Shown: in pieces, positions 7,801 to 30,870 of the stretch
Numbering within the stretch: position 1 is the stretch's first letter
Layout: each line of letters opens with the position of its first letter
DNA from: Marsupella aquatica
Lineage: Eukaryota > Plantae > Marchantiophyta
Direction: 5' to 3'
Length of the DNA stretch: 64,000 bases
NCBI GenBank assembly: GCA_973895155.1
Contig: OZ316899.1
Coordinates: 3,971,241 to 4,035,240, forward strand
Translations under genes and position numbers: made by a program
The notes under the pieces: model-generated
The model's input: only the letters and a program-made list of their open reading frames with translations
Told to the model about the DNA's origin: nothing
The model's database searches: none

Positions 7801-7951
7801 GGTCACCAAAGTTGAAACTAAGAGAGGCTTCTTTTAGTGCTTGACTCCTTGTAGTGGGCATGCCACTCACAATCACCTTCTTATCTCCCTTCTTCTCTTG
7901 AACAGCAAACCTGCAAACACACCTCCAAGTCTTGTGGCTCCACTCCAACAA
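1886..7951 (-). CDS. Gag-Pol polyprotein, 2021 aa (first ATG at 7861, MPTTRSQ)
   Basis: Gag (WFNSL...WDAFKLAFLQEF); three CX2CX4HX4C knuckles; protease VDGGSGVN; RT LDGYSGYNQI and FIDD; RNase H VDVSG; integrase H-H-C-C, GIDFIGP, SDRG, ERAN; C-terminal WLGPY. No stops. Confidence 0.97.
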   Translation of the reverse strand: MLEWSHKTWRCVCRFAVQEKKGDKKVIVSGMPTTRSQALKEASLSFNFGDQLEQPDWVDIHLQAEAEPGVGWSDTSSSTTNTSEDQEATMVVTQRARFQYKTFHGKPKEDPDAWLEDFIGTAQANGEFDIKLTTLAGVLRGEARPWFNSLSNAIKNDWDAFKLAFLQEFRKVGEESEALIKMGEIRMGSKESVRRFLQRFQRLATKLDPRPVDSMLLAWFVASLPRKMGVSVRQSHPNTLDEAIEAAQSYRSAEISSSKSRRKKKRFAYSDSSSSSSESSSSVEDTSESESEESSSSSDSESDSEEDSEKKKKKKKKAKRKSDQKRRASKKKPGGKHHKSATFNLVEGSTPATKEKKVMDNKMSEITNQLKALSVHFAGVQPDRRKVPVNRAHVWCVKCKSFGHTPQECQGWRNQVQYVNEESNDVYQASEVVDYFYEEAPEMVYQISGGPRTLQGRPAPPMAPQLMPGLQPRMVDQMGPQGPGGVARTTVVICWNCQKPGHYSNSCPEPRRQGQGAPYPLCAVCKREGHTTANCPIGSAAKMMIGRIEAPPPAVAKAPGEATVNFLSMEWQEEAKDGVTQVAGGENQPDLPGMETPEEEAVCYKVSTRSTRKKERVEERKKRKERKEHSTESPIEVEVGAEVQVPPAEDSDYKRDHPKLFYPKVNEEVKRQLEEMEAKEHQEAINKDLKVAKALKEKAEVEEKKETSKVPSYDIKKDVKDCLVTATVGQLIKDNPLYRRQLKEMLVGRRRRKLPKVGTPADVMMVCEDLGAPEIDVQVNGCVLSYVPVDGGSGVNIMIEATAQQLGFKKLQPTARTMRLANGARVLPVGTLTQVPTLIGGQEFLLNYLVMRPARPSTYPILIGRPWLYGAKVVSDWGKKEFRFGKPATSVSWGHDKHQGETTDELDEYDSELSDELSTKSESDEDEVYMLNMVSQWTEEEVFGEEQEQEALTSHSPLPSLSEVTSLEEVKQAETSAKESNQEDTITMAQEVDQTSKGAAQVEIKTRSNDQSLKAKHLALLKLKIKELEDQLKAANSEEDETQEDQHSSKEKEELSAENAPVYGGMRLAQLEGTFDSTMRNKMEVIRAEQYRTISVQQDKTFNLGNALGSGEEKTIQDLLGEYVDVFAWSHLDLTGVNPELGEHRIDLMLGASPVRQRQYRMNPKYSLMVKEEIDKLLEAGFIYPVLNSEWVSPIVIVPKKPGLDGKPKIRVCQDFRKLNEATKKDHYPIPFTDMVLDLVAGWEVYSFLDGYSGYNQIWIRKEDQLKTAFTTEWGIYAFRRMPFGLCNAPGMFQRLMMNIFHDYLRKFLEVFIDDFAVFGRGKDHVEHLRMTFQRCREVGLKLHPGKCFFGVEEGILLGHKVSKKGIEVDQEKVAVWMAVKFPTSVTELRGFLGCLNYYRRFIKDFAKVALPLTSMLKKGAEVEPSVERLASFQELKNRLVEAPILIAPDWSREFHVYVDVSGFCIGVVLSQLDDQNRDHPIYFASRLLAPAEKNYSPTDREALGIIYSCKKFRHYLLGYKVVFHTDHNALKYMVNKPDVTGRVARWILLLQEFDYEVRVRPGKKHGNADFFSRIEGEEDLKEVDDQFPDEDLFHVGSGGDTWYLDIIQFLLTTRLPRDLNQEEAAVFLRKIRPYLLVKGVLHKEGVDGRLRRCLEKKEISIVMRAMHEEEAGGHYASATTARKILDAGYWWPTLHKDVSLFVRGCDPCQRTGKPAHSRHHPLTTILPLAPFEKWGIDFIGPITPVTRSRRNRYILLATDYATKWVEARPTSKDNALTVARFMYQQIFTRFGPPLELVSDRGTHFLNEVVEELTNHYLIKHRKTTPYHPKANGLTERANGIIGKILNKTVAAHKTDWDDKLYSAVYSYNLAFKTTTGHSPFYLVFGQHSLVPVEFEVPTLRVSVEERMEADQSLMERAYQLEELEEIREEASKQVKKKQAQVKQHHDKKLKKPTSLLAGQLVLLYDSRYAHFPGKLHTRWLGPYVVHQVYANGSIQLATLEGEVFPTRVHHDRLKRYFNQE

Positions 7952-7967
7952 AAACTGTAAAGAGTTG

Positions 7968-7985
7968 TCCCCGGCAGCGGCGCCA
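7968..7985 (-). promoter_or_regulatory. Primer-binding site, tRNA-Asp type
   Basis: Minus strand TGGCGCCGCTGCCGGGGA, one mismatch from the Athila-type TGGCGCCGTTGCCGGGGA (complement of the plant tRNA-Asp 3' end). Confidence 0.88.
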
Positions 7986-7995
7986 AAAACAAGGG

Positions 7996-10900
7996 TGGGA
8001 CTCTATGTCAAACACTTGCCAAGGAGCTTAAGCGGCTTTTCTCCCCAAAAGACTACCTAATACCTGCTCCATGTCATACCAGGGTCACAAAGGATTGACA
8101 AAACTTCTGAAGTGTGCTTACAATGTCCAATCACTCCATACATAAGTAGTTTCAACTCTCCACTTCTAGAGAGGTAGTCCCCTTGACTACTTTTGTACTC
8201 ACCCCTTCCCCTCTCCTCTACTCCAAGGATCAGCAAGGGGGATCTCCGCTCCAAGCTGTCACCTTAGAGTAGATTCTCACACAAACACCCAAGAACCCAA
8301 AGTACTTTCCTCTTCAAGCTTAAGTCTCCTCAAGACCCTCAAAGTAGTGTTACCCCTCAACCTTGCCCCCCTGGCCTTGGTTTGGGTCCACACATCCCCT
8401 TTGAGCCCTAGAGAAGGCTCCTCTATCTAAGGACTCTTCCTCTTGTTCTTACTTCTTGTTAACACCACACACCAAGCAAAGTACTTTCCACCCTCAAGCT
8501 ATAATCCTCTCTAAGTCTCAAAGTAATGCTATACCTTAACCTTGCCTCCTTGGCCTTGGTTTTGTACTAGCACATCCCCTTCAAGCTTAGACCAAGATTA
8601 TACCATAGCATGGACTCTTCTCTTGCTCTCATATACTTCAAATGCACTCACACTTAATGGTCACAATGAAGATTGGTAAGTCTCCTTTTATTGCATCACC
8701 TTTACAACAAAAGTTCACTACACATTCTCCACACTAAGCATGGACCACCTCTCCTTTCTCAAGCTTAGCCCTACCTTGGCAAGGTAGAGATTTCACTTAA
8801 GAGATGAGACTCCCGGTCCCTAACAAATGAAAACTTCCTCCTTATATACTATCTCCTTCCACATCACACCAAGCTTGACCTGGGGTCCAACTATACCTCC
8901 CCCAAGTCCTCCTAACACACAAAGTCCAACTCTATAGTTCATAGCCCACCCTACTACTTGCTATTTTGCCTCCTTCCAAGCCCTGGAATATGCCACACAT
9001 GAGTGGTATGCTTTGACTTCCAAACCTACTCCCACTTATGGTCCTCCTCACCAGCTTACCAACCCACTTGAAAGCTCGCAAAAAGAGTGAGTGAGTCTCA
9101 AGTTGTGCCTAGTCAAAGTTGGCCTTATTTTACTTGTAACCCCTTTACTACCCTAAGTAAACTACCCCCTATATTTACTTTTCTTAACTTGATGGCCTTA
9201 CACCTTTGGCCAAAGGTAAGTACCCTTCTCTAGAGCCTAACTCAAGTGGTATGGGTGCAAGAAAGGTCAGCCCCTAAATCTGGTATTCATTCCCCTATGC
9301 CGACTTTGGTTTGCAAGTTGTCGGGACTCCCTCGTGGCCTCGGTTAAAAATATATTTGAGTGATTACTTTTCTGGGGTTCCACCTTCACCAGGGGGTGCC
9401 TTATCTTCCCCTAACTCAGCACAAAAAAATTTGGGCCCCAACGGATACCTCTAGCCAAAGTTATGCCCATTCTCCCAAGGCCTGTTTTTGGTGTAAAGCG
9501 GGTGTAAGCGGCGGCCCGATTACACTTACCTTACATGCCCCTTATGGGGATTCCACGTGTCATGAGGGGAGAGCACTCTCATTATACTCATGTTTCTTAT
9601 GAAGAAATTGTAAGGACAGCAATGTTTGCAGCCATTTCTCTCTCGTGAATTCAATCTAAAACCACAGCATTCTCTATTGGATTCTTTCTTGTGCAGCAGT
9701 CCAGCTGATCAGCCGCCAGCCCCTCAATTTCACAGCCACCATAGCTCACAGCCAGCCTAGTCAATTTCGCAGCTAGCCCACCTCTTCAATTTTGCCGCTA
9801 GCAACACAGTCAATTTCGCAGCTAGCAGCACAGTCACATCAGCGCATTTACAGCACAACAACAGCAGATTTGAAGCACAGCAGCAGCAACCATAGCTTGA
9901 TTCCTTCTCAGTCAAGCAGGTCTCTCTTCTCAATTTCGTAGCTGCCCACCTTTGCAATTTCGCAGCTAGCAGCAGCATCATTCAATTCAGCAGCATCAAG
10001 GCAGCAGCCAGCCAATTCTCATGAGCATCTCGTGCCTGATTAGTAGGAGCACCTCTAATCTAGTGTGCAGCTGTCATAGCAGCAAGCAGCCTTCCCAATT
10101 CAAAGCCAGCAGCGATCCTAATTTGCAGCCATAGCTCTTTTCCTTCTCAGCAGCCATAGCTTCTTCAATCAGCAACAGCCCTTGCTTCTTCAATCAGCAG
10201 CAGCCATTTCAATTCAGCCGCCCTTCCTTCAATTCAGCCGCCCTTGTGCTCAATTGATTCCTCAAGTAATCATGCAGCACCTTTGGACAGCCTCCCGGTG
10301 CTTGACGTCCTCACCAGCCTCGTGCTTGCTCCTCCTTGCCTCGTGCTCGCCGCGTGATCGCCGCCCACGCGGTTTACACTTAGAAAAAAATACATTTTTT
10401 TTTTGGAAAAACAGCATTTTGGGGCGATTTTGGACCCCCCTCCAAAACTCACACATAAGTCCAAAAGGACTTCTGAGTAGCTCCACTGATTCTATGGACA
10501 TAGGACTATGTCCGGGTTTACTAAGATATAAACAAAACCCTATAACAACTTTTCTAAAATTAGGCAAAGAGGGTCAAGTCTTTATGTCTTCCAAAATTCT
10601 TCTCAACTTTGAGATGCTCCCAAAAAGTAACCAAGTGTGACAAAGTTGTCCCACAAGTTTCTAGGGATAGAGGGGACCATACTTAACCCACTTCCAAACT
10701 TGGAACCCCTACATTTACCCATCAGCTATTTTTCCCGGGACCCGCTATTTGGTAACTTTGATTTTTGCCAAAATACTTATAACTCCTAGGTTAAGACCCC
10801 ACTTGACTTCATACTTTTTCAGGGTTCCCTAGGGACCTCCCAGCACCCATGGGAGAAATATCAGCCAAAAATAAGATGTCCGGTGTCGGGTCATTTTTCG

Positions 10901-14244: not shown

Positions 14245-15879
14245 TGGTCCTTTATGTCTGAAGGACTTCACTCCTTCAAGGTGTGTCTGATTTTCTGAAC
14301 GTACTCCTTCCCTTCAAGGACTAAATTGTCCCTACGAATCCCTTCATATTTTTTATGAAGTGGTCCTCTTATGATCATCTCATTTAATAAGGGAAGAGTT
14401 TTTCAGAAGAGTTTTTTGTGTAGTATCGTGAAATTCTGTCAGTGGTGCCTGCAATTGCTTTTGAATCTACTTCAGTTTGTATTCACCCTTACCTTTTAGC
14501 CCAGTGTTTCCATAAGTTTTTCCATATAGTAAGTGGAAATAGTCCAATCCTGCAGTTTAGAGTAAATAGTGCTCTAGTTTGCAATAATTTTGGATCTTAC
14601 TTGCAGAGGATCTTACCTAATTTTGGATTTTTCTTGTAGGGTACAGTTTCCAAGGGTGTAGGCAATTCAAGCATGGGACATTCTGGAATACATAGAAGGC
14701 TATTATGAGTTTGATTCATGACATGTACATAAGAGTACACAAGCATTCCTTGCTCAGGATTGCTATTGAATTATTATTGTTTAGAATCATTTTATTGTTC
14801 ATAGGTTTTACTCTGAGGGTAAAGTCCACGGTGGCTGTTGTATATACATATGAAGTCAGGAAGTAAAGAGTTGTAAAGCAATGAGTGATATTTTGGATTG
14901 AAACTCAATCTTGCACACAATTGTGGACTATGTTGTGTACCAATTCTCTCCAAAAGATGAAAACTACATTCCAATCAGAATTTGTCACAACCCTCTAAAT
15001 TAGACAGAGCACCATCATTATCCGCCAAGCCTGTAGCATAGCCCTGTATTTAAACTTAATTTCCCCATGTGGCCTTGCACTCCACAAAGCAAACTTTAAT
15101 CTCTAAATGCCAAAGTATTCATTGCCATTTTCTCATTTCCAATGAACAATAATTAAGGACAGCAGCACCAGCAACTTGCACATCCATTTTATATTCATAG
15201 TAGACATAACTTGATATATTCTAGATGGCAGAATGTTTGTTCAAAGTTGTAGCCTTAGTTAAAATTATCCACCAGATCAATTTCCAGTGACTCAAACTTA
15301 GTTACTCGATCTAGTTTAATTGACTTAAACTTTTGGATCAAGTCATCCATGGCAATTACTACATGAGTTCATGATTCCAAGTCTGGTAAGGACACTTTTG
15401 GCTCCGTGCAAGAAGAGGCACGGTCTACCATCTCCATTTTGCTGCAATCAAGAATCAGTTCAGGGTTGTCAAAATATTTTTGACCCCCTCCCTCCCAATC
15501 CAATGAAGTCGCCTTCCAACTGTCCACTAAGTCATGCTATGTTGGGAACTATGCCGAGTCCTTGAAATTCCATGATCTGCTCTCATAGAGTTTCAATTGC
15601 TAGCAAACAAACTACCAACACAGAAAATAACAATCGAGAAAGGTCCTTTAGACTTCCTTGACAAGGACCATAAAAGGACAGAAACAAATGTGCCACAAAA
15701 CCGCCAACTTTATTCAAAAGCTGAAGATCTTCATAGATCTTGTACAAAGTCAACATTGAGATCAAACTCAAGTACTACAAGCGCGCGTGTAGTTTCCCAA
15801 AACTACAAAATAGCACCGTATCGTGCATCCCTTTGAATTAGCTTTTTGCCTCCCCGCTTTGACTGATGAATGCTAACTC

Positions 15880-17100: not shown

Positions 17101-20018
17101 TATGACTAATGTTCAGCCAGCAAGAAGTACCAATTGATCGATAAGAAATGGAAGATCAGATTTACCTTCCAACTTAATCCTCCATTTGATCAGAAAAGGG
17201 TATTACGCCGGCCTCTACTTGACTGCACCAAGAAACAACAGATACAAAAAATCTGATTCAATACCAAAGTCTACAAATTACACTGACAAACAAATTTGGC
17301 CATGCAACAAATGCATCATGGATATATAAAATTAAGTTTTCTCACTGTCAATCAAAGTGGACCATTGCCAAATTGTTAGTCCACATTCAAGAAGGAAGCC
17401 GCAATCTCTTTTTGGAACTGGCTGGTGGTGCAGAGGATTTAGGAGGGCCTTTCAAATCGAGCATTTTGTGGTATAACTGGATGTCCAGGGCCAACTCCAC
17501 CTAGCTCTAACATCTGCCTGAAGGAAACCTGAGACATGGACTTTGGGCTAAACAGCATTGTGAGTAGCTCTGGAGTTGTCAAAGGTCTACTTAGCACCTT
17601 CCTAGTTGACTCCAAAGCCCTCATTCCTTTCCCCAATTCCCGACCCTCAGTTTTGGGTGTCAAAAGCCTACCTGTAGACTCGCCATCTTGGTTATCATCT
17701 TTCTTGGACTTGTTTCCCAGATTTTGTGACATGGGACCCGTCTTCAAAGCAAGTAGCAACGTTTCACCTTCAGCTTGGAGGTTTGCCTGAATGCACCCAT
17801 GTAACAATATCAAGAGTCAATGCACTATTGGAAGAGTTTAAAATTGGAACAACCGCTTGGACTATCCAATTAAGCGCAGGCAACAACAAAGGAATTGATA
17901 GTGCATCACTTGTCTCATTTTCCATACCTGTTCATGCACAATTTGGATCTGCTGTACAAGTTGTCTCCTATTGAAAAGATCAATGCTTGGCGGCCCATAG
18001 TACACTCTTTTCATGTGATCTATGTAACTTACTTGCCTCTGTTCTCCGTGCGTGGGTAAGCCCCATGTTTGTAACCAATCATCAGAAAATGGTAGCCCAC
18101 AAGCTTCACACTTAGGAGGGGGTATTTACAAACGACAGGAACCAGGAAATAGTAACAGCAAACAGTTACTGTTACCAGGAGAAATGGAAAAAAGAACATG
18201 GGATTGAGCTCCATTATTTGGTCAAGAAGTTAAAAAAAACCCATCAATAAACCCCATTTTCAGTCGTTTTCAATACCACCATCCAATTGTCAAGGAAAGT
18301 AGGGGCCATTAGAATAAAGGTGTTGCCGAAAACCGGTGATGGCCAGCGCACAACGGTAGTATGTCGGCAGGGAAGGGCAAAATTTAGGTATTCATAAAAT
18401 AACGAAAAAGATGGAGATTCTACGTAACGTCAATCGAGAAGAGAACAGTAAACTTAACGACCAATAGAAAAAGGCGTTGCCAAAACATGCGGATATTAGC
18501 AGCGCCCAGCGCTAGTATGCTGGAAGAGATTGTCCGTCACATCAATCGAGAAGTGAACACAGGAAACTCAATTTGAAGCATTTCCAACAAACAAAGGCAA
18601 TGGCAGACGTTGAATATTTTCAGCGATGGCCGCTACATTAAATGTCGGACCTCAAGAAATCAACGTCTAAACACGGAACACAATGACCATAGGCAGCGCT
18701 CGGCGCTAGCTCAAATCTAGGAATCAATGAATGACCATGAAAGAACAAGAGAGCCGATCCAAAAGTGCATTCCTTAATTCCAAAATTGGTCAAAACATAT
18801 AACCGGTATTACACCATCCGCAGATCATCTTCAAATCAACCCACGGCAAAACATGAACATAAGCAGCGCTCGGCGCTAGCTAAAATCTAGCTATCTTAAA
18901 TGTAGCCCGCCCTGGCCCGTATGTGCTTTATCTCGACCTGAGCCGCACATAACAGGGCCGCTGATCCAAAATGGGCCAAAGATGGAGCCGGAAATACATG
19001 AACTTAGAATCACCTATAGAAGAAATCCCACGGTCCAAGACGAACAAAAGCAGCGCTCGGCGCTAGCTTAAATGGAAAGCCTATGGCCACTGAAGCTTGT
19101 GTCACTGAAACCATCTCCGTCGTGATTAACTTTAGCTCTGCGACTGGCAGTCGTCGTCGATGCCCGCCCTGGCACGTCTGTGGTTTTGCTTGAAACCTAG
19201 ACCCCTGAGACGCACATAAGAAGACGAGGGGCGCCGAAACTCCGAACTCTGATTCCCGGGGTCTGGAACATTTGTATCTAGGAAGTCAACACGTCCCAGT
19301 TGCTCTTGTACTCATAGCTCAATAGGCTGAATACCATCAGCAGGAACGAGAGAATGAAACAAAAAACGATCAACAACTCCGAGCGGAGTGTCCCGGTCAT
19401 TAATCCAAGGTAAGTTCCTCTCCCCGGGACTAATCGCCTCATCATAAGGAAGAGAAAAACAATTCCGGAAGGTCGAGGTCTCGCTGGATGTGTCACCATG
19501 AATGGACTCGAAGGAGCTAAAGTGACTCTCGTCCGGTCAAACTCTGGAAGGAGCAAAGAAGTCAAGCATCTCCTCCAAAGACATGATCTCCTTCTTCTCC
19601 ATCTGGTGGGCACTGGTAAACGCAATCGAAGCTAATGACAAGACCGGTGGTGTTGAAAAGACTCGACTTCGAGAGAGGTTGTGTTCGAAATACCTTGCAA
19701 CAGCGACCCAATGGAGAGTTTAGGTTCGGAGATCCGAAAAAACGTATCACAGAAAGGTTCAACGCAAAAAGGACCGTTGAGAAAGAGACGACTGTTCCGA
19801 GAGCGACAAAATATGTGGGGCCAAGGAACGGACGGAGGATTCAAAATTCGCAAGTAGAAAAATAGACGTTTGGGGAGCGCCCGGCGCTAGTAAGGGAAAT
19901 AATGAATTTAATCCATTTTATTATCAATGTAATGTAAACAAATCATATGTAATATGATAAATAAATGGATTAAGATAACAGCGCCCGGCGCTGGTAAAAT
20001 GTAAGCCAAAAAAACTCT

Positions 20019-23000
20019 TTAAGAATCGGACAATTCCGATTCAGAGCTCTGTGACCTCTCGGTAGAGACCGCCTCATCATCTACATACTTGCTCCTACAA
20101 ACGTCGTCTACATAAGGATTTCGGACAAATTTCCTATCAACTCCTCTTCGTAGCCGGAGACCTTTGTTTTCCCAACAAAGAGTCCTCTAATTGTCTTCCA
20201 TTCTTGCAGCATTCTCAGCGTAAGAGGGTAACACAAATGGTTTCTCCGGAGTGACAATTTCAAAACGAGCTACCTTTCTTATGAGTTTGAAGCGTCTTCT
20301 CGTATTCCATTCGGACCTGGGTGAGAACAGAAGTTCGTCAACCGATTGTATGAATGGATATCACAAAGCCATGAAGGAACTGGAAAGGAGAAAGAAGCTT
20401 ACGAGTTTCAGAACATTACTCGGAAGAGTCATCGCTGTCACTCTGGCCAGCGGATTGTTCCTGACCCTTCCCCTCAGGTGTGCCATCTTCATCTTCGTCT
20501 GCTGTACCACCACTTGACTCATCGTCAGAGTCAAAATTGAGTACAGAACGGAGCTTGTCCCTCTTTTTCTTTTCGGGTGGCTGAATTGGGGGTGGCAAAG
20601 TTTCGACTTCCTTTGGAGAAAGTAGATCTAAGAACACCTTGGAACCAGTCTCAACGAAATCTTTCCTATTCTCCACTCCAATTACAAACCTCCCAGAATA
20701 GTCTCCAGCTACAAAAGAGTTGCCCGACCCCACTGTCCAATCCATGAAAATATCCCTCGGACGAGTGATGAGCTCAATCACAGATTGCATGAATCCAACA
20801 GACAATCGGGCATTTCCAGCAAATTCCATCTCAGGTGTTGGATCGACTTTGAGAGAGGGAAGTCCAATTAAATTTGTTATTGAGGGATCTTCGGTGGCAG
20901 ACAGAGGTCTAAACCTCGAGTCTTTTGGCACCTTCCCTTTTTCAGACAGTCGAGAGAAGACGTCCAGCCTCAGCGTGAAGATCTGTAATATAACCCAAGC
21001 AAGGTATGTCAATGGATGCATTTGTAGACAATTTTTTAACGGAAAACCAGATGTCACGATGAGAAATTTACCTGTCAATCAGTCTTCGGCGCGTACATTG
21101 GAACTGACAAGACAACATTGTGTGACGAGATGCAATGAAACTTCTTTGAATCTTGACAAGCCGATATAACCTGAGACATCGGATCGTATTCCCCGTTATG
21201 TAAAATGGCCAGCATTCCGTCATCAGATAAAAATGGGTCCATTCCACGAAAGAAAGATGTGGTCAAAGTGTGGTCAGGGACATTCCATTTAGGAACTTTT
21301 CTGTCTAGCAGAGATGGTTTAAGTCCTGTTGGAAGGTAAATGAAACCCGCGTGGACCCCAAAGGATCTCTCCTTTCCACCACGCACAACGCCCTTCTCTC
21401 GAAAGCCAGACTTCATGAGATCCTTTCCCCACTTCTCTACACCATTCACCCAGTCAGGCTTCTCCCCTTTGTTAAACGTTGAGTCGTAGAATTCTGAGAT
21501 GCTAGATTCAACAAGGCAATGCCTTGAAAGTCTACTCTTGAAGTCCCCGACTTCGCGTTGAAGACCTACAGCAGCAGCACTTTCTCGAGAAGAAGATCCA
21601 CCTTCAATGGTCCTTTTTCTCTTCTTCCTTGTACTGGTAGCATCCACTGGAGCGATCACCTTCCCTTTGTCGGTGGGAGTAATTGGATCGGATGGTGCTC
21701 CGGTATTGGCTTCTGAAGCCTCTGGGGTGGCATCTATCTTTGTATCTCCGCTCCCCACGGCGTCCGACTTTCTTCCTGTTCAAATGGATGTCGACGTGAT
21801 ATCCGTCAATAAAGAGACAACGACAATGCTAACGCCCAGCGTTGGCCAAACTATCATAAGACTTGGCCTTAAATATACATCTTTCCGAGTAATAAATACC
21901 AATTCTGTTTCTAAAACAATGACTCTCATAACAGCGCCAGGCGCTAACAATGTAACAGATTTGGACATAAGCAGCGCCGGGCGCTAACCAAATGATATTG
22001 ACAGATATTGACTGCCATAGCAGCGCCGGGCGCTAACCAAAGGAAACAAATTATACTTACGTTTTTTCCCAGATCTTGTTGATTCACTTGGGGCCGTAGT
22101 ATCTGCTTTTGCTTTGGCGCGAGGCTTCCTGCTTCGGTCAACATGAACAATTGTTGTCTCGCATATTGTTTGCAATTCTGTTGTGGATTGATCCACATCA
22201 TCCAAAAGCCCCTGCTTCATGTCAGAAACAACGTTGACTGGAATCTGGGACTTAGACAGCTTATGGAAAGCATCCTTTTCTCTGTGATCAAAGGGAGAGT
22301 CCCATCTATCTGTATCCAGGTACCATGGACAATGGGTTCTCTCCCATTCACTCAAAGGTCTTGCTGGGAAAATTCCCTCGGTAGGATACATAGAATACAA
22401 TTCAACTAAAGAATTACTCTCCGGTATGACAGTCCACTTGAGGAAGGCTGCGGGATACGCCCAGAAGTAATCAGGATTGGTAGCCTCCATGTGGATGTAA
22501 AAATGGTAGAGATACCGTTTTGCTCGCTTCTGGTTCTTCAAAGAATAATCCTCTTTGTTAGGATACTTCGAGGGCCACATTGTATTAAAAAACTTACCCT
22601 TGACAGAGTCACCGTATTTCCTAAAATCATTCGTAACTATTTCAATGAGAGATTCGAATGATTCACATGCCCAATCTTGTAAGCGATTCACGGGAATGGT
22701 TTGTTGGACCTCTCGTAGAGCACATTGCAACATCCCCACCGCAATCCCTTCTACATTATTCCATGTAATCCAAGTGTGACACCACTGTTTGACTGGATCA
22801 TCATTGACGCTATTCGGATGGAAGAATTGTCTCCGGAGCTCCGGATTGCAATGTGCTACAAGCAAAGTACTTCGTAGCTTGGCGTCAAGAGCCAAAACAG
22901 CTGTAAAAAGCCTGGCCCGGTCCATGGTACACAACACGGTATCTGGTTTCTTCTCTCGCTTATTCCTCTCCGTGACAGCATACATCTCTGCGCACGTAGA

Positions 23001-24267
23001 TAGAAAGTCCTCAAACTTTGGACTCAACAAAGGAGTGATTTTCGAGGTCTTAACTGCCCATTCCTTGGTTGCTTCCTTCATCATAACGGCATGCCTTCTG
23101 GAAACCTCCTCGACCGACCAAGGGGTACCGAGGGTCGCAGCGGACTCCATGTCAATCTTGAACTGATTCGAATACGACTTAATCTTATCCTGACATAGAA
23201 TGTACAAAAGAGCCTCCTGAGGCATCATCTTTGTGTACCAGGATCCTTTTCGCGTCTTCACCCTGATCTACTCAAACTTCTTGTAATTTGCAGGGTCGAT
23301 GAGCTTACTATAGTACTCCAGGTCGTGCATCAAGACCCGCTTAATTCGATCGGCATCTAGGATCCAGGAGGGTTCCACAACTGCTTGTCCTAGCCTGAAA
23401 TAAAAGAACGAAATGAGAACATATAAGCAGCGTCGGGCGCTAGCAAAAAATTGCCTCGAAAAGTTATGCTAGAAAGAATGAACAATTCATAATGACTCAC
23501 GAAGTTTTGCACAAAAGGGTATCTTACTGGTTAACGGTGTGCATAGCCGCTTCGATTTCTATCAGAGAACCCTTGTCGCCATTAAAAACAGTACAAAGCA
23601 CACGCGGGTGGTACTTTGGGTTTTCGGGACTCTCTTGAGTGACAAGAGTCCACGAGTAAAGCCTATGGTTCCCGTCAAAAACTGAGAACATTCTGTCTTT
23701 CAAAACTAGAAAATTTGGGTCGGCAGCACATTCTTCCTCGAATTTCTCGTTCTCAGATGTCCATATTGGATCCCAACTCTCACGAATTTCTTGAGTACAG
23801 GTGAGAAGCGCTCCCTCAGCATCGGTAGGTTGAACGTAAAACCTCATTCCAATCGAAGAATTGTATCCCATGCTACGGAAAGAGTCTTTTAGCTTGTCGA
23901 TGGAAGAACTGTCTTTCTGTAGAGTTTGGACAACCTCCATATGCACCAATTGACATAGTGGAATTCGTGGAGGCTCTTTGTCAAACCCTCTGAAATCCTT
24001 CCCAAACGACATGACATGTTTTGAAATAAGATCCGTCTCGGAAAACGAAACATCTTGAATCGCAAATGTGTCAAGATTCTCCATCTTCTTTCTCGCTGGT
24101 TTGGCAAACGAAATACTTGAGATTGGAACAAGCGATGCGGTGGACCTCGTTACTCGACGCGTATACACTAAACCAGAGAATGAAGACTCAGAAGACTCGC
24201 AATACCCACGATCCTGATCCCCAACCACACTATACCCCCTCGACGAGGAGGGGATTGCATCCATCAT
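20019..24267 (-). pseudogene. Five-exon ~1212-aa gene: N-terminal ParB/Srx-like domain, helical middle region, beta-class N4/N6 DNA-methyltransferase-like domain, acidic tail; three nonsense codons
   Basis: Exons 24267-23528, 23394-22061, 21775-21072, 20982-20420, 20316-20019; all GT-AG introns with compatible phases. VFDGNHRL at ~23660-23680. FIYLPTG (motif IV position, ~21324-21344), FLSDDGMLAILH, then DIFMDWTVGSGNS...GRFVIGVE (motifs I-II, ~20722). Stops: TAG 23268-23270, TGA 21075-21077, TAG 20187-20189. Confidence 0.78.
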
Positions 24268-25412
24268 CTTTACGATGAAAGGTGTACGAACGGAATCCTC
24301 ACGACTAATTACCAATTCTCCGTACCATATTAACAGTTGTGTCCGTATTATATCCGATCAATGAGCGCTATTCCCCTCTTTGTAATCGGTTGGAGAGACG
24401 TTACTCATTGCGAACGACAAGATTCAATTTAATTTATCAGTGACGGAAAGCGACAACTTAGAAATTGCGATAAGTATTAATGTGAACTACGCTAAAATGT
24501 TTGCGTGATAATCACGATGAACATTAGTTACTATTAAAAGTTACCGTTGTCTCAGCACCTTGCGGACAAACATGCAATGCCAGCGCCGGGCGCTAACGAA
24601 TAAGAGACTACCAAATTGAAGAACTTATTGGTGAACAAATGCTAGCGCCCGGCGCTAGCCATTTGAATAATTTCATTAACGTTCTTTCTAAGCAACATAT
24701 ATTGTCAACAAACTCCTAAATGTACCTGTTTCACCTGTAGTAACCAAATTTTACTTAATATTATGAGATTAAATTTATTGTATCAATAGTAGCGCCTGGC
24801 GCTAGTAAAATTTTACTATATTTGCAAAAATATTTCGTGTGTAATTATGCTAGCGCCAGGCGCTAGTCATAATACTTTTCAAATTATGTCATTGTTATTA
24901 AAATGGCTTTTAGGTAGCGCCCGACGCTAATGAAATGGACGCACTTGTATAGACTACTATCTAGTCGTATTCATGTAATAAATATTCCTGACACCCGCAC
25001 TTGACGGGCAAAAACGACAAATGTATCATTTATGATTTCAACGGACGCAAAGTTGTGCGTGTTCTATGTCGTATTGAAATGTCTCTTTCAACGGCCGGTG
25101 GTCCTCGAAGGGGTGTTATAAGCACAAGAAATACGGTTGGGATTGGGCTATTGCATGAATTACTTCTGCCCTAAACTTCTTTCGTCTACAATGTCGCGCT
25201 CAATTGTTATTACACGTGCTTGTACCCGGGAAGTCGTCAAAGTTCCCGTGCAGGTTTCTGATACTTACAGGCAAGTAAGCGAGAACTATCTGTGCGGGAG
25301 ATTCGATTTGAGAATCAATGACATTCTGTCGATTGTTCCTGAGGAGTCATCGAGTGGAGGACATGAACCAGCTGCGGCATTTGATGTGGATGACTGAATA
25401 CGTTTCTGGCAC

Positions 25413-28400
25413 ATGAATGTAGGACTTCGTTACACGCTTCATGTCCGACCTACTCCTCTTCAATCGGTTGTTCAGGACATTCCGCCCCAGGTTGTTGAAA
25501 TATCTGAGAGTGAAGATGAGGAAGTTGCGCCCAATCCTCCTAAGAAGCACAAAGCTCCAAGCTCTAGTTGCCTTAAGAGTGAACCGGTGGCCACTTCCAC
25601 TGCAGATGTCCAAAAGGTCTACAGGCGGAGTGCAATGGACGCCTTACTCAAGGCCACCGGCCATAGTGAATTGTCAAGATTTATGTCGGCAGGGGACTTT
25701 AGACACGATCAAGTTCCTTGTTTGCCAAACAAGTACAACGGAAATATTGTATTTGAATTGCCTCCCATTGTGGGAATGCAGTCCAAAGGATCTAGATTTC
25801 GTGACATGGACCGTGCCAAAGATTGTTACATTTGGACCAGGATTTTTCCGACGACCGTAAACGTGCAACCAAAGAAACACTGGGAGTTTGGTAAAGTCAG
25901 TTGTACTGGGTTCGTCGAGTGCAGGAACAAGTCTTGTGAATATTTTTTGCGAAAGAAGAGATGCAATTCTAAAGCGTGGGCTGGTACCCCTAAGCTTAGT
26001 GGCCAGCATGTGGTGGGTTCGCTCATTGAAGAGGGTGGTATAGTATGTCACTACTGTGAAAAGATTCCTTTTTGTGTGGACTCTTGCCCTGCTCGCTTGT
26101 TCTATATGTATCCACAGGTCCTACTTGATACAGCAACCTGTAGTCACATGTCTCGGCTCGCGGTACATATAGGTGAACATAATCATCCGAGTAGAAAAGT
26201 TTTCTCGAGGAGTGCTGAAAAGATGGCCGAGGACTTAATAAAAAGAAATCACGAAGCTAATCCTCTTGCGAAACCGGCTGGGATTTTGAATTCGGCGACT
26301 GGTTTGCTTGTGAAAGCTCTTTGCGAGAACGTTGACAACATCGTAGATATTGAAGAAACCGAAATTTGGAAGTCTCTCATGGTTCTATCTACTCCTCAGA
26401 AATTTGCGTCCCTTTGTCGCAGCGTTCGAATGGACCAGGCTGGTCGTGGTGAGTTAGATTTCCTAGCTCGAATGCAAAGGTCAAATAATATTTCTTTTCT
26501 CCAAAGGTATCTTCTTCCGGGTCAGGGTTGTTTAGCAGATCGTCCCCACATATTCAAAATGTCAGTGAAGGGTCATGGATCTGGTGTAGATCTTTTACGT
26601 CAGATGCAACCTGGCGGAAGACTGGAAGGGGCTTGGGTGAGTTTTGATGTCATGAAACGAGTGACAACCGACTGGTTTACTTTTAGCGCACACGTTTACG
26701 ATCACAACTTTCGAGCTCTTTGTACAATATTCACATGCGAACTAAAAGCTGAAGACACAGAGTCCTTTGAGAAGGCATGGAGAATTATGATAGAGGTTTG
26801 TAAGGAAAATGGGTTACATGAGGTTACCATTCAAGGTTTTATGGCCGACAATGCTCAGGCTGGATGGATTGCTGTTCGCAATGTCTTTTTTGGGGGTCAC
26901 CCAGACCCTGAACGTGAACGCTCCGATGCATTCCACTTTTACCAGTCTTTCCATCGACATTCCACCGAGGGAGTACTCAAGGGTAGGCAACCTGAACATC
27001 TAAGACTATGGGAGAAATTGCGAAATGCTCCATCATTCGTTGCTGCGTACCGAGTTTCTAGGGAGATTGTGTTATGGTGGCAAGCAGGCAACTGTGTTCC
27101 AGGGAAACTGATGATGTTGCAGAGTTGGATATCATGGTGGGTTGTTCGATGGCGTCAGTGGGGGAATTTCATTCGCGTGGTAAGTTTTATCAATGCTTAC
27201 AATAGTCACTTCGCCAGGTTTTTTACTAGCGCCTGGCGCTGCTTTTAACTGTACAGATGCCAACATTATATTATTACATCATGCACAATGCTAGCGCCTG
27301 GCGCTGCTTTTAACTGTACAGATGCCAACATTATATTATTACATCATACACAATGCTAGCGCCTGGCGCTGCTTTAAACTGTACAGAGAACTTTGCCACA
27401 TTCATGACTTATGAACACTTGATAATACCAACATTACCGTAATATATATTATATACATTGCTAGCGCCTGGCGCTGCTTAAACAAATTGACTAAAGTTGG
27501 TCTGGATCCACTTCATTGTAGAGCAAAAGCGCAGAAGAAGGTGCCCTCATTCCAAACTGTACAGGTTCTGAGTCAAGGCACGCTTCAATGAAAGCATGGG
27601 CAACCAAAAAAATGGTGGGCCTCTTCGAAGCATGCGAGTTGATCAAAATCGGGCTATATCTCAAGTTGCAGGTTACAGTGCATATCGGAAAGGACTCAAT
27701 AGAGGGAAGGGGCCAACTATCTGGGAATTGGCATTCCGTTCGGCAGACCAAGCAGGTTCACCCAAGTTATTTGAAGAAGCCACTAACATGATTCTTTCCA
27801 ACTCTGCCGATTTTGATCTGGGTAGGAATTCTCCTCTGAATGGAGATATTGTCACCAAATCGGTTAAGAGGAAGGGACTTGCAACTGGGATTGTCTCGCC
27901 ACAAGACTCCCATCGGCATGACACCATTCTCATCACTACCCCAAATACTCGAGGATTCAAACGGAAGAATCTCAACAAGACTGAGTTCACTTCCATTCCC
28001 GCCAATGTAGTAGATCCTGTAGTAGACCTCTGCGGGAGTGACACTTCAACAAGTGAAAGCGATTCCCTTGCAAACACCCCTGAAGCCACGAGGGAAACAA
28101 CATCATCTCAACAACCACGCAGTGCCCCCGCTGTGGTTCAACGTTTGCCGACAGAATCAGCTCCATTGGAAATGGACGTTCCAAGAGGAAGCTGGCATTT
28201 GAGATGGACGGCCAAATATGGGGCAGGGCCACAGTGTAATGGGACCTTGCATGGAAATTCTGACAGAGATGAGTGTTGACATCGTGTCAAGAAAATAGGG
28301 TTGCATTCTGCTGCCGGTGTTGTCAGCATTGTTGTCAGCGGACATCGGATTTTCAGAGGAACTCCCATTGCCGAAATGATATGGTTCTGCCCAAACAGCA

Positions 28401-29047
28401 CATGCTACAAGAGCCGCCCGCGTCGTGGTGTTGAACGCCTTCCTCCTGTACCGGACATCCTGCTAGTTGTGAAAGGAACAAACCTTTCGCCTGGAGAGAT
28501 AGAGTACCTTCAAGCGCAGGGAGTCTCTATGGTCCAAACAGCTACGCCCTCTCGAACTCGAACTGCACCATTTGCATTCAACTTGAGAATCAATGTTAAC
28601 ACATTTCCAGAGAAAATCAATTTTTCGGAGCCCAACGTGCGCCTTCGTAGCAGGAATGGGAGGAACTCCAGACCTCGCTCTAATCTAACTGTGGCTCATA
28701 GTAAACAAATGGAGTCGGCTCGAAAAGAAGCTATGACTCTGGATGGAGAGTGGGATGTGATTAGTGGAATTGCTTATGGGAAACAATTCAGAATACGGAC
28801 TCACGAGAACCTTCGATCACCAAACACTTACTTTGTCCAAATGTGCATCTTCCCTACTTGTTCCTGTGAGGATTTCTTCCGTCGTCATTCCCGCGGCAAG
28901 CCGTATATGCCCTGTAAACATTTGTACTGGGTGTTCATAAATGTCTTCAAGTTTCATGTAGAGGAGTCTACCCTGTGTAGCCAGCCGATTTTGACAGTTG
29001 GAGAAGTCAGACTTGTGTTGGAGAGGCACAACGCAAATGGTTTATAG
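25413..29047 (+). pseudogene. MULE-type transposase, ~1097 aa: GCM/WRKY-like Zn domain, DDE core, C-terminal SWIM finger; one frameshift and one nonsense codon
   Basis: Exons 25413-27179 and 27522-29047 (GTAAGT...TGTAG, phase 0; true start uncertain). SCTGFVECRNKSC...CHYC...CPAR...HIGEHNHP; D at 26646 (SFDVMK); D at 26847 (FMADNAQA); SDAFH at the CxxH position; E at 27570 (SESRHAS); SWIM CSCEDF...CKH. Frameshift ~27636; TGA 28277-28279. Confidence 0.85.
27222..27390 (+). repeat. 65-bp tandem repeat (~2.5 units) in the transposase intron, one palindrome per unit
   Basis: CTAGCGCCTGGCGCTGCTTTTAACTGTACAGATGCCAACATTATATTATTACATCAT... repeated, motif starts at 27228, 27293 and 27358. Confidence 0.92.
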
Positions 29048-29701
29048 AGGGACACGATTTATCCTTAACTGTCGTATTCCATAACGGATACTATGTTGTT
29101 TTGTCTTTAGTCAACGGATATTACTTTAGTTTTTTATGTGGTTTTGGTTAGCGTCGGGCGCTGGTCAATAACTTATTTATAAAATTTTGTTTTTTGTGGT
29201 TATTGCCATTGGATGGTTCCATAAGCTTTTATTATCGTCCCATTATTCTGCGTACTTAATCCTTTGTTAGCGCCTGGCGCTAGTTTCACACTCTGCCTGA
29301 CAGACCCCTATGTTTCCGATAACATAATTCAGTCCACAACTGGCTTTGTGGTGGGTCCCGCCTGAGCATACTCCATTCCTCCATGGGTATTATGGTTAGC
29401 CTTTTTTTAACCACACTAATGAAGTATATGAACTAAATGAAGCATTTAAAAGTGGACTGTTTAGAAATGTTGCTGTATTTAAACAGCAGTGAATTGAATG
29501 ACAACCCTTTTTTATCTATAATCTGAGCAAGTGACAATGGATTGGAACCTCTTCGAGCAACTGTGAGCACACTTTTCCCTTAGATCTGACGTCGTGTCTT
29601 ATGCCAGTAGGAATATTTTTAGCTTAAGTATGTGGTTGTTCCTTACGTGAATTTTAGAAAAACTTTGCCAAATAGTACACTTTTACAATAACAATTTCCT
29701 G

Positions 29702-30870
29702 TTACCAGGAGAAATTACCTGGTAACAGGAAAACTGTTTCCTGTTTCCTGCCTCCACTGCTATACCCCTTAGGAGTATCCTTTGAATCACCAATCAAACA
29801 AAAAAGACAGCTCGGATGATACGTGTGCCCACAGGATGTTGGGATCCAATTGTAACAATGATAACCATTGCAACAAACGGGACAACTTGACAACAAAACT
29901 TGGGTTGACACTAGAGAAGTAAGTGTCGCAACAAAGGTCGGTCTCAAGGTTGGACAGGGATTCTGCAATATACTCTCCAAAGTTGCATATTCAGACTTTT
30001 GTGCTTCCTCCGCCAAGTTAAGCTCCTTCAAGTTTGCATCCACAGCTGCAGCCACTTTTTCAGTTGGGACACCATCCCTAACGATGCTTCAAACCCCTTC
30101 TGCTTGGCTGCAATGATCTTGGTCACCTTCACCATATCCCTCTTGATGGTCTCTTGGCGGCCCTTCAACTCAACACTTTTGCTTGTGAGTTTTTAAGTCA
30201 GGTTTCCAAGAGAGCACTAAACTCAATGCTCCGTAATCATTGGAAACAATTTGCATTTGTAAGAGTACAACAATGCTAGACTAGTAGACTGCATAGTTCA
30301 GTTTGATGATGCAAAATAATCAGAGAATGAAAGAGTACAAATAGTTCCCTTGCAAGGTAGCCAGGGGTGAATATACCTCATTCCTAGAGCCCTCATCTTC
30401 CTTGTTGGCCTCTAGCTCAAGGTCTAAAATGATGTCATCAACTTCCTTGTCTGTAGACTCTACCATCTCCCGCAATTGATCCTATTCTTGCTCCATAGAT
30501 CTCAACTGCTCATTAAGCTTTTCCACGGTTGCTGGGTGATCCCGTTCAGCTGCATCTAGGGCCTTCAAACTCGCTTCAACCTTGGCAGCATCTGGCAGAG
30601 CCTCACATTTTTGGCACTTTGTTGACAAAATTGTTGAGTCAAGCATCAATAGTAGAAGTCCGATAGGCTCAGCTTGATAAAAGGGCACCTTTGGGACATC
30701 ATAGACAATAGCCTTACATAGGGTGGTATGTACCTCATTGACCAATCCAACCCCCGCAGTCTTATCATCGGCTGCATTATCCCAAAGAGACAATTCAAAC
30801 TCTTTGGAGGCATCTGCTGATTTTGGTTTGCTCTTAGTTTGCGGGGTAGTCTCTATTGACACTTGACTTT
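29702..30870 (-). pseudogene. Decayed coiled-coil plus RING-like zinc-finger gene fragments; reading frame continues beyond the nest at ~52632
   Basis: CPVC...CGHTYHPSC in 29702-30055; ORF 30482-30862 rejoins across TSD ACTTT as RVSLKDQIQSQVSIETT. Confidence 0.5.

Follow-up and report, generated by a model that had tools for sequence, protein, structure and literature searches.

A Mutator-like element (MULE) of the liverwort Marsupella aquatica carries, dispersed through its non-coding DNA, 21 copies of a short GC-rich palindrome; every related locus that comes with enough non-coding DNA has a GC-rich palindrome of its own, and the type of palindrome follows the phylogeny of the transposases. 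The element lies in a 64-kb stretch of contig OZ316899.1 (positions 3,971,241 to 4,035,240; henceforth "the window", to whose coordinates motif counts and open reading frame (ORF) pieces refer) and has two divergent genes, one for a transposase, the other for an accessory protein with a ParB-like and a methyltransferase (MTase)-like part. The reading that we favour, while giving it somewhat less than an even chance, is that the palindromes are family-specific docking sites for an element-encoded dimer, a self-recognition system of the VANC or parS kind, and that the reader is most likely the ParB-like protein. The case is comparative: the copy in the window is itself dead, and what it may once have done has to be read from its own remains and from its relatives.

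An array of palindromes in non-coding DNA

The palindrome AGCGCCnGGCGCT is found at 21 sites in the window (14 exact matches and seven with one mismatch), every one of them between 18501 and 29281; AGCGCCNGGCGCT likewise has 14 exact matches. Admitting two mismatches yields 22 matches, the sole outlier being a two-mismatch site at 38221, and shuffled sequence is expected to give 0.00 exact matches, or 0.68 under the same relaxed condition. The count of 21 and the confinement to the element within the window, both noted in an earlier sequence-only reading of this DNA, thus stand. The outer AGCG...CGCT is identical in 21 of 21 sites, and in the seven variant sites it is the inner CC/GG that has changed, each time by C>T or G>A. 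Weaker conservation reaches (G)CTAGCGCCnGGCGCTAG(C), and information content drops quickly beyond it: at many sites the flanks are unrelated, and what is conserved is a 13-nt core, not a longer repeat unit.

The sites are laid out as six clusters and one single site. Cluster 1 (18501-19064; four sites, at 18501, 18695, 18865 and 19052, in repeats spaced 170-187 bp) lies between the left terminal inverted repeat (TIR) and the 3' end of the accessory gene; cluster 2 (19876-19992; two sites) is just 3' of the last accessory-gene exon; cluster 3 (21933-22034; three sites) is in an accessory-gene intron, and the single site (23429-23441) is in the intron that follows the ParB-like exon. Cluster 4 (24582-24928; five sites) occupies the region shared by the divergent genes, cluster 5 (27228-27475; four sites) the transposase intron, where a 65-bp tandem repeat spans 27226-27387, and cluster 6 (29150-29281; two sites) the DNA 3' of the transposase gene. 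That the array avoids all predicted exons, as the sequence-only reading had it, is nearly but not literally so: 19 of the 21 sites lie outside every ORF piece, and the other two, at 22022 and 27228, overlap ORF-piece tails that are not conserved and extend past the part alignable with homologues. The probability that 21 sites would all miss the 56% of the element taken up by ORFs is ~4e-8, a figure to be read with the reservation that selection would in any case disfavour a GC palindrome within coding sequence.

The palindrome is absent from the 380 bp at the left end of the element and the 486 bp at its right end, where the TIRs have a repeated motif of their own, the 11-mer CTGTTACCAGG: its three exact copies in the window are all inside the two TIRs. 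Palindrome-free ends with a separate TIR motif are not the pattern expected if the palindromes were the sites at which a transposase binds the ends. A role as hairpins, in DNA or RNA, was also considered for the palindromes and rejected, their spacers being merely 0-3 nt. Spacers of that length exclude stable hairpins; going by their sequence and by general knowledge, such sites are most naturally understood as double-stranded DNA recognised by a dimer.

Palindromes that change with the lineage

Are the palindromes anything more than by-products of tandem duplication, or sites for some generic host transcription factor? Some of them do lie within tandem repeats, and array growth by tandem repeats is seen in the window as well as in the Riccia arrays described below. 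That they lack any element-specific function is nevertheless scarcely tenable: the 13-nt core is conserved and its flanks are not; many sites are dispersed among unrelated flanks; and, from lineage to lineage, a different palindrome occupies comparable places (3' of either gene, in the shared promoter region and in introns), which neither a single host factor nor chance would readily explain.

The comparison takes in two loci of Riccia sorocarpa (L010 and L011) in which transposase and accessory gene are divergent neighbours, as they are in the window; among the loci compared, the two genes are found together only there and in the window. In one of the Riccia loci (L011), twelve CCGGCGGAsTCCGCCGG sites are distributed over the intergenic region and the DNA 3' of each gene, and seven intergenic 95-bp repeats contain a variant of the same palindrome. 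The other (L010) has ten CCAGCGGAcnCCGCTGG sites, which lie in the flanks, and, in the intergenic region, at least six TTCCGGCGAGsCTCGCCGGAA sites. (In that locus one palindrome is limited to the intergenic segment 8506-9236, and the other to the 3' flanks, 2501-4255 and 14354-15080; the separation hints at two recognition specificities within one element.) A contig with only the accessory gene (L001) has five TTAACGGnnCCGTTA-type sites in introns and flanks. Among the transposase contigs, L006, with a transposase 51% identical to that of the window, has the same palindrome as the window; L007 has the same arms with zero spacer; L004 has nine GCTAGCGGnnCCGCTAGC sites, upstream of the gene and in the same intron; and L002 (from Calypogeia), L005 and L008 have palindromes of the TCTCGGAGAGsCTCTCCGAGA type.

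A maximum-likelihood tree of 15 transposases divides into three well-supported groups, and these coincide with three families of palindrome half-site; in one of them (clade A: the window, L006, L007 and L004) the palindrome is of the CTAGCG type with a spacer of 0, 1 or 2 nt. The co-variation of motif with transposase phylogeny, which the sequence-only reading had put forward as a check on itself, is accordingly borne out. Since palindrome type matches transposase group, the arrays are a heritable and diversifying trait of the lineage.

Co-variation with the accessory gene is a more equivocal matter. The sequence-only reading had named the product of that gene, or else the transposase, as what recognises the motif: the Riccia loci do have both gene and motif, but palindromes also occur in relatives in which the gene was not detected, so that the transposase could be what binds them. 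The accessory-gene domain was not found, even with hidden Markov models (HMMs), in the 10-kb flanks of L002 or in the short contigs L004-L009. A CACTA-type transposase (PF02992, E=2e-39) at 2335-4278 of L002, just upstream of the Calypogeia MULE copy, may explain the missing gene there; L002 could be a derivative that has undergone deletion. Long loci come from two clades, A and B1, and as both of these have the accessory gene, it is probably ancestral. A scan of metagenomes for further loci brought up four contigs only, of 1.2-1.8 kb and without informative flanks.

A transposase of the Mutator fold

The transposase gene (25413-29047, + strand) consists of exon 1, from 25413 to ~27240, an intron at ~27241-27548, and exon 2 at 27549-29047, which aligns with one uninterrupted ORF of L004. 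Twelve homologues were found, among them a Calypogeia fissa protein, and Pfam annotates none of them; PF10551 (MULE) was not detected in a Pfam search of the window transposase. Direct searches were nearly as empty for the element as a whole: run with the ORF pieces, Pfam and PDB sequence searches returned the PF01555 tail alone (E=1e-3), with no MULE match and no ParB match, so that methods based on fold were needed.

An AlphaFold (AF2) model of the transposase, built from 13 sequences (predicted local distance difference test score, pLDDT, 72), matches with Foldseek probability 1.0 Arabidopsis FRS11, FRS5, FHY3 and FAR1, K. lactis alpha3, ZSWIM1, ZSWIM3 and ZSWIM9, FB-NOF, and six transposases of the IS256 family. 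By its predicted fold, then, the transposase is of the Mutator/MULE type, and the fold search agrees with the sequence-only reading in this and in the FAR1/WRKY-GCM1-like N-terminus and SWIM motif that go with it. The FAR1/WRKY-GCM1-like zinc-finger region, putatively DNA-binding, lies at 25860-26193 (+) and ends in ...HIGEHNHP; β-strands are placed at residues 157-253 of the model, and the fold matches span the N-terminal FAR1 domains of the FRS proteins. The SWIM-type CxC...CxH motif (28856-28924, +) was read from the sequence; Pfam SWIM gives E=0.2, and the ZSWIM fold matches are in keeping with it.

An accessory protein of two bacterial-type parts

The accessory gene (20022-24357, - strand) is spliced and encodes a protein of ~1,200 aa. 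Its ORF pieces (24357-23527, 23468-21987, 21779-21079, 20982-20419, 20360-20190 and 20186-20022) are collinear with a 5-kb Logan contig (L001), a JGI contig (L003) and two Riccia sorocarpa proteins, P0031 (1,191 aa) and P0167 (1,207 aa). The piece 23468-21987, next to 24357-23527, is one exon with an in-frame stop; an intron with GT..AG borders lies at 21071-20983; the two 3' pieces were paired with the tail of P0031 by eye (LP.YA, NPYVDD), unscored. The sequencing runs gave no clean evidence of splicing: depth is equal over introns and exons, and the runs are DNA-like. As the same layout is found in the Riccia loci, this is a conserved second gene of the element and not the captured "cargo" for which it had been taken.

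The ParB/sulfiredoxin (Srx)-like domain, at 23527-24084 (-), has an intact DGNHR (GxxR) motif. A two-sequence HMMER profile of the N-terminal piece collected 299 relatives at E<=1e-3, the named ones all from Riccia or the fern Adiantum, and across 67 of the relatives the G, N, H and R of DGNHR are nearly invariant. Fold was examined on a model of a Riccia homologue (P0167, residues 140-800; pLDDT 83). The top 12 rows of a VIA-align comparison, with Z from 9.1 down to 7.1, are ParB of Caulobacter, Myxococcus and Bacillus, Noc, PadC and pNOB8 ParB; the matches to ParB and Noc run from Z 9.1 to 7.5, sulfiredoxin comes at Z 6.0 and unrelated rows at Z <=5.2. The ParB and Noc rows with Z >=8.1 align over 178-199 residues, the ParB DNA-binding domain included; ParB is aligned to ~221-231, with its DNA-binding domain, in a superposition stretched over residues 27-390 of the model at a root-mean-square deviation of 4.4-5.2 Å. 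A ParB/Srx fold of the accessory protein's N-terminus is thus supported at the level of fold, on a homologue. (Another assignment of this piece, to the fungal DUF3723 family of Starship accessory proteins, was tried and dropped: none of 67 family members matches PF12520 at E<=0.1.)

Other relatives of the domain bear on how it is used. P0149, a protein of 1176 aa from the fern Adiantum capillus-veneris, has the ParB-like domain (206-319) followed not by the MTase-like part but by a C-terminal NIF/FCP1-type (CTD) phosphatase (PF03031, E=2e-12). The effector joined to the ParB-like domain appears, then, to be swappable, and the phosphatase partner fits a design of targeting module plus effector. 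Two side observations may be recorded here. P0137 (658 aa) has its ParB-like domain at 361-447 behind an N-terminus that is a Ty3-type gag/capsid (PF03732, PF19259); a chimeric gene model, or one element inserted in another, may account for it. The uncharacterised A0A388KDW7 (1172 aa), from an AFDB cluster, ranks with the closest structural matches of the ParB-like plus helical region (residues 230-762); being nearly of the accessory protein's size, it may be a further relative.

The second part, a β-class amino-MTase-like domain at 20530-21500 (-), is split by the intron at 21071-20983. A divergent spliced gene with ParB/Srx-like and β-class MTase-like domains had been proposed from the sequence, and both assignments are supported. 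The window protein matches PF01555 at E=1e-3; Pfam bit scores for the domain, 19.6-26.2, stay under the cut-off of 26.7; a single sequence matches DpnA at E=5e-4; and a nine-row family profile finds DpnA at 2.8e-7 over 164 positions, CcrM at 4.5e-5 and MboIIA at 6e-3. The motifs follow the permuted order (IV ... X, I), with the equivalent of motif IV ~35 residues upstream of the aligned block. Motif I is kept: DWTVGSG (in the window), DCNIGVG and DFAGGWG stand opposite the DPFMGSG of DpnA. Motif IV is not: YLPT (window), SLPN (L001) and DLPT/DMPT/DMPS (Riccia) replace the canonical (D/S/N)PP(Y/F/W), and the stacking aromatic residue and one of the prolines are absent from every member seen. 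Judged by these residues, the C-terminal domain is most likely no longer an amino-methyltransferase.

This bears directly on the proposal, made from the sequence, that the accessory protein marks or protects the element, if the mark were one of N4-cytosine (N4C) or N6-adenine (N6A) methylation. An active enzyme placing a protective mark at or around the palindromes has several things to be said for it: the homology to β-class amino-MTases is genuine (the family profile against DpnA), the motif I that binds S-adenosylmethionine is kept as DxxxGxG, and Marchantia has functional bacterial-type N4C methyltransferases, with the motif TSPPY (bioRxiv 10.1101/2021.02.12.428880). We nonetheless think it very improbable: all Pfam scores are below the gathering threshold, and motif IV has the degenerate form (D/S/Y)(L/M)P(T/S/N) in all members, and degeneracy throughout the family makes DNA methylation by the accessory protein unlikely.

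Which protein may read the palindromes?

The ParB-like reading takes its form from the architecture of intact relatives, which encode a transposase with FAR1-type zinc finger, MULE and SWIM parts together with a divergent ~1,200-aa accessory protein made up of a ParB/Srx-fold N-terminus, a helical region with a stretched superposition on the ParB DNA-binding domain, and a degenerate MTase-like C-terminus. ParB and Noc bind palindromes of similar size as dimers. A dimer of the ParB-like protein would dock on the element's palindromes as ParB and Noc dock on parS and NBS, dense arrays would provide family-specific recognition of cognate copies, and the bound protein would keep the promoters and body of the element accessible, or regulated, in the manner of VANC or Spm TnpA. 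The protein would act by occupancy or by recruitment rather than by DNA methylation, a preference that we base on the catalytically dead look of the MTase-like domain. The high observed-to-expected ratio (o/e) of CpG within the element, detailed in the next section, would suit a lineage that evades CG methylation.

Several points weigh against this reading: 1) The ParB-fold model is that of a Riccia homologue, whose identity with the window protein is 25-33%. 2) Foldseek gave the same families with weak E-values, of 0.27 or worse, and a profile of 67 ParB-like domains found no match among PDB sequences. 3) The docking of the accessory protein on the palindromes is something that we infer. 4) Palindrome-bearing relatives in which no accessory gene is detectable suggest that the protein is not required. 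5) The high CpG could simply be that of a young copy. 6) The present copy is itself non-functional. The fourth point is of limited weight, in that all of the contigs concerned are short except L002, which, as already noted, is maybe a deletion derivative.

It is also the point from which the other obvious candidate draws its strength. The transposase, through its FAR1/WRKY-GCM1-type zinc finger, might read the palindromes as a dimer and act on its own promoter and introns, as a family-specific transcriptional activator or anti-silencer, leaving the ParB/MTase-like protein to some other job. The palindromes of L002 and L004-L008 occur where HMMs detect no accessory-gene domain, and motif type follows the transposase tree. 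There are precedents as well: FHY3/FAR1, which are domesticated MULE transposases, bind the GC-rich CACGCGC through the same domain and dimerise (PMC13306707), and the AtMu1 transposase is by itself enough for cognate copies to become activated and hypomethylated in a sequence-specific way (bioRxiv 10.64898/2026.08.24.746577). AtMu1 binding peaks at the TIRs, however, and here the terminal 380-490 bp are free of palindromes and have a different repeated motif; most contigs on which the accessory gene was not detected are too short for its absence to be established; and the probable ancestry of that gene, argued above from clades A and B1, also counts against a transposase acting as the reader. 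On balance we consider the transposase a possible reader, and a doubtful one.

ParB proteins bridge and condense DNA around parS, and one can imagine an architectural use of the same property: a ParB-like protein, seated on the internal palindromes, bridging or condensing an element of 11-15 kb, or tethering its excised DNA, so that the ends meet or the copy is not lost. The elements are long, the sites are spread over their whole body, and the ParB-like fold has its GxxR. Specific support is nil, and the proposal leaves unexplained both the MTase-like domain and the phosphatase and oxygenase effectors of relatives (bioRxiv 10.1101/2025.02.11.637652); we regard it as improbable.

Docking by the ParB-like protein, then, remains the reading that we prefer, and it has a stronger and unlikely version: that the accessory protein is a transposon-borne nucleotide-switch clamp of the ParB type, which would load at parS-like palindromes and spread from them over the whole element, its dead MTase fold serving as a reader or shield of DNA or CG sites, so that the host methylation machinery would be excluded from cognate copies only. 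If that were true, ParB/parS would have been repurposed in land-plant transposons as a self-recognising, anti-silencing coat. Even the weaker version, if true, would make a ParB-like protein with private palindromes a different, bacterial-type solution to self-recognition. Self-recognition by transposons and their escape from silencing are understood mechanistically in very few systems (VANC, Spm TnpA and AtMu1), and liverworts are genetically tractable through Marchantia, which makes the predictions of binding and of anti-silencing directly testable.

Limits and state of the element

The MULE copy extends over 11,648 bp, from 18120 to 29767, and is delimited by its TIRs and target-site duplication (TSD), by diverging contigs at the left end, and by a switch in CpG o/e. 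The TSD, CTTAGGAGG at 18111-18119 and CTTAGGAGT at 29768-29776 (identical at 8 of 9 positions), stands directly outside GGGTAT, which begins at 18120, and ATACCC, which ends at 29767. Limits of 18300 and 29310, proposed earlier, have no TSD and merely a TAGGGG match, and these ends have been replaced. The TIRs are degenerate: the left one (18120-18190, +) is identical to the reverse complement of the right one (29698-29767, -) in 44 of 75 aligned columns. CTGTTACCAGG is found at 18169 in the left TIR, and at 29699 (+) and 29718 (-) in the right one, where the pair (29699-29728) can form a hairpin; in addition, 18155-18185 and 29685-29715, both in the TIR regions, have a direct similarity of 31 nt (81%). 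To judge by sequence, the CTGTTACCAGG pair and the 31-nt similarity are candidate end-binding sites of the transposase.

Logan contigs from four runs were aligned over 18060-24059: thousands of short contigs, at 85-99% identity and from two organisms, match the element, so that the family must be highly multi-copy. Ten contigs of run X2 part from one another just before 18119/18120, and the word depth of 18060-18259 is about 4-12x that of the next bin. The left end is thus supported by read data also, the right end (29767) by sequence and CpG only. Within the window, BLAST searches with the element and its flanks found neither a second copy nor an empty site.

The CpG o/e is 0.66-1.12 in the six 2-kb bins within the element and 0.09-0.71 in the remaining bins of the window, with its minimum (0.09-0.23) at 2001-10000 and a sharp switch at either end of the element. 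This CpG-rich copy is either very young or belongs to a lineage that escapes the decay driven by CG methylation.

Both genes are pseudogenes here. The accessory gene has two stops: an in-frame TAG at 23268-23270 (-), where KKFE*IRVKTR stands opposite residues of P0013 and L001 that run on without a break, and a TGA, also in frame, at 21076-21078 (-), two codons ahead of the splice donor, where the Riccia proteins have coding residues. In exon 2 the transposase gene has one frameshift and one stop. The frameshift, of 1 nt, is at about 27636-27640 (+), where the fit to the L004 ORF passes from frame +1 (up to ...EACE) to frame +3 (beginning at VDQNR); the stop, a TGA in frame, is at 28277-28279 (+), where RDEC*HRV stands opposite the RDECRNRI of L004. 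What lies between 18120 and 29767 is a decayed, dead copy of a multi-copy family of Mutator-like elements.

Comparison with known systems

The general idea of the sequence-only reading has been anticipated: ParB-like plus DNA-modifying accessory genes with inverted-repeat arrays have been reported from algal transposons (bioRxiv 10.1101/2025.02.11.637652 and, to judge by its passage on Sola1-1_Ec32, PMC12477816). According to that passage, the accessory gene of Sola1-1_Ec32 from Ectocarpus encodes a ParB-like DNA-binding and a DNA methyltransferase domain, and its product is suggested to attach to the element that carries it and to modify that element (Dinatale et al. 2025, PMC12477816); the same passage makes no mention of palindrome arrays. 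As far as it allows comparison, which is by architecture, the likenesses are a protein of ~1,100-1,200 aa, a ParB-like N-terminus, an MTase domain of the PF01555 type, and a location on the strand opposite the transposase in a large DNA transposon; the differences are a Mutator rather than a Sola element, a liverwort rather than a brown alga, and a degenerate catalytic motif.

In red-algal Plavaka elements, the protein PAG3 joins a ParB-like domain to a 2-oxoglutarate (2OG) oxygenase next to tandem inverted-repeat arrays; self-binding and modification are proposed, and the cassette moves between transposon superfamilies, Mutator included (Petroll et al. 2025, bioRxiv 10.1101/2025.02.11.637652 / Curr Biol). 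The Marsupella element has in common with PAG3 and PAG2 a ParB-like N-terminus on a transposon accessory protein, inverted-repeat arrays, and a PF01555 methylase (in Plavaka a separate gene). It differs in that the PAG3 effector is a 2OG oxygenase and the PAG2 methylase is fused to SET, the ParB-like and MTase-like parts here being in one protein, and in that its arrays are distributed over all non-coding parts of the element instead of lying next to the gene. Matched by architecture and layout, the algal module (a ParB-like and a DNA-modifying-type domain, divergent from the transposase, with inverted-repeat arrays) is also what is found here. On these comparisons a ParB-like module appears in brown algae, red algae and liverworts, and a ParB-like domain in fern proteins as well.

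The analogy with VANDAL elements, drawn from the beginning, has held up: each related element has a palindrome of its own, arrays grow by tandem duplication, and the motif follows phylogeny. Like VANDAL21 with VANC21 (Hosaka et al. 2017, PMC5735166), this is a MULE with an accessory gene and with a short motif in its own introns and intergenic DNA that evolves through tandem repeats and differs between related families. Unlike the palindrome, the VANC motif, YAGTATTAY, is AT-rich and non-palindromic and occurs in one orientation; VANC is unrelated to ParB; and VANDALs are without TIRs (PMC5735166). Binding and hypomethylation, both inferred here, have been demonstrated for VANC (PMC5735166). 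Target motifs that diverge between lineages have been described for VANC (PMC5735166) and for Spm TnpA (bioRxiv 10.64898/2026.08.24.746577).

With bacterial ParB and Noc, and with the ParB-MTase fusions of phages and plasmids (Iyer et al., PMC4738411), the accessory protein shares the ParB/Srx fold, the GxxR motif, the order of an N-terminal ParB and a C-terminal β-class MTase, and palindromes of similar length. It is set apart from them by a eukaryotic host, introns, a length ~3x greater with a large helical insert, the lack of a ParA partner, and the degenerate motif IV.

Full-text literature searches found no report of such a system for liverworts or for the MULEs of land plants. The element brings a new host lineage and a new transposon superfamily to a kind of system put forward, in 2025, from Sola and Plavaka transposons of algae. 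What it adds to the algal papers is comparative: palindromes that change with the lineage, at equivalent non-coding positions and distinct from the motifs of the TIRs; an MTase-like catalytic motif that has been lost throughout the family; and the retention of CpG.

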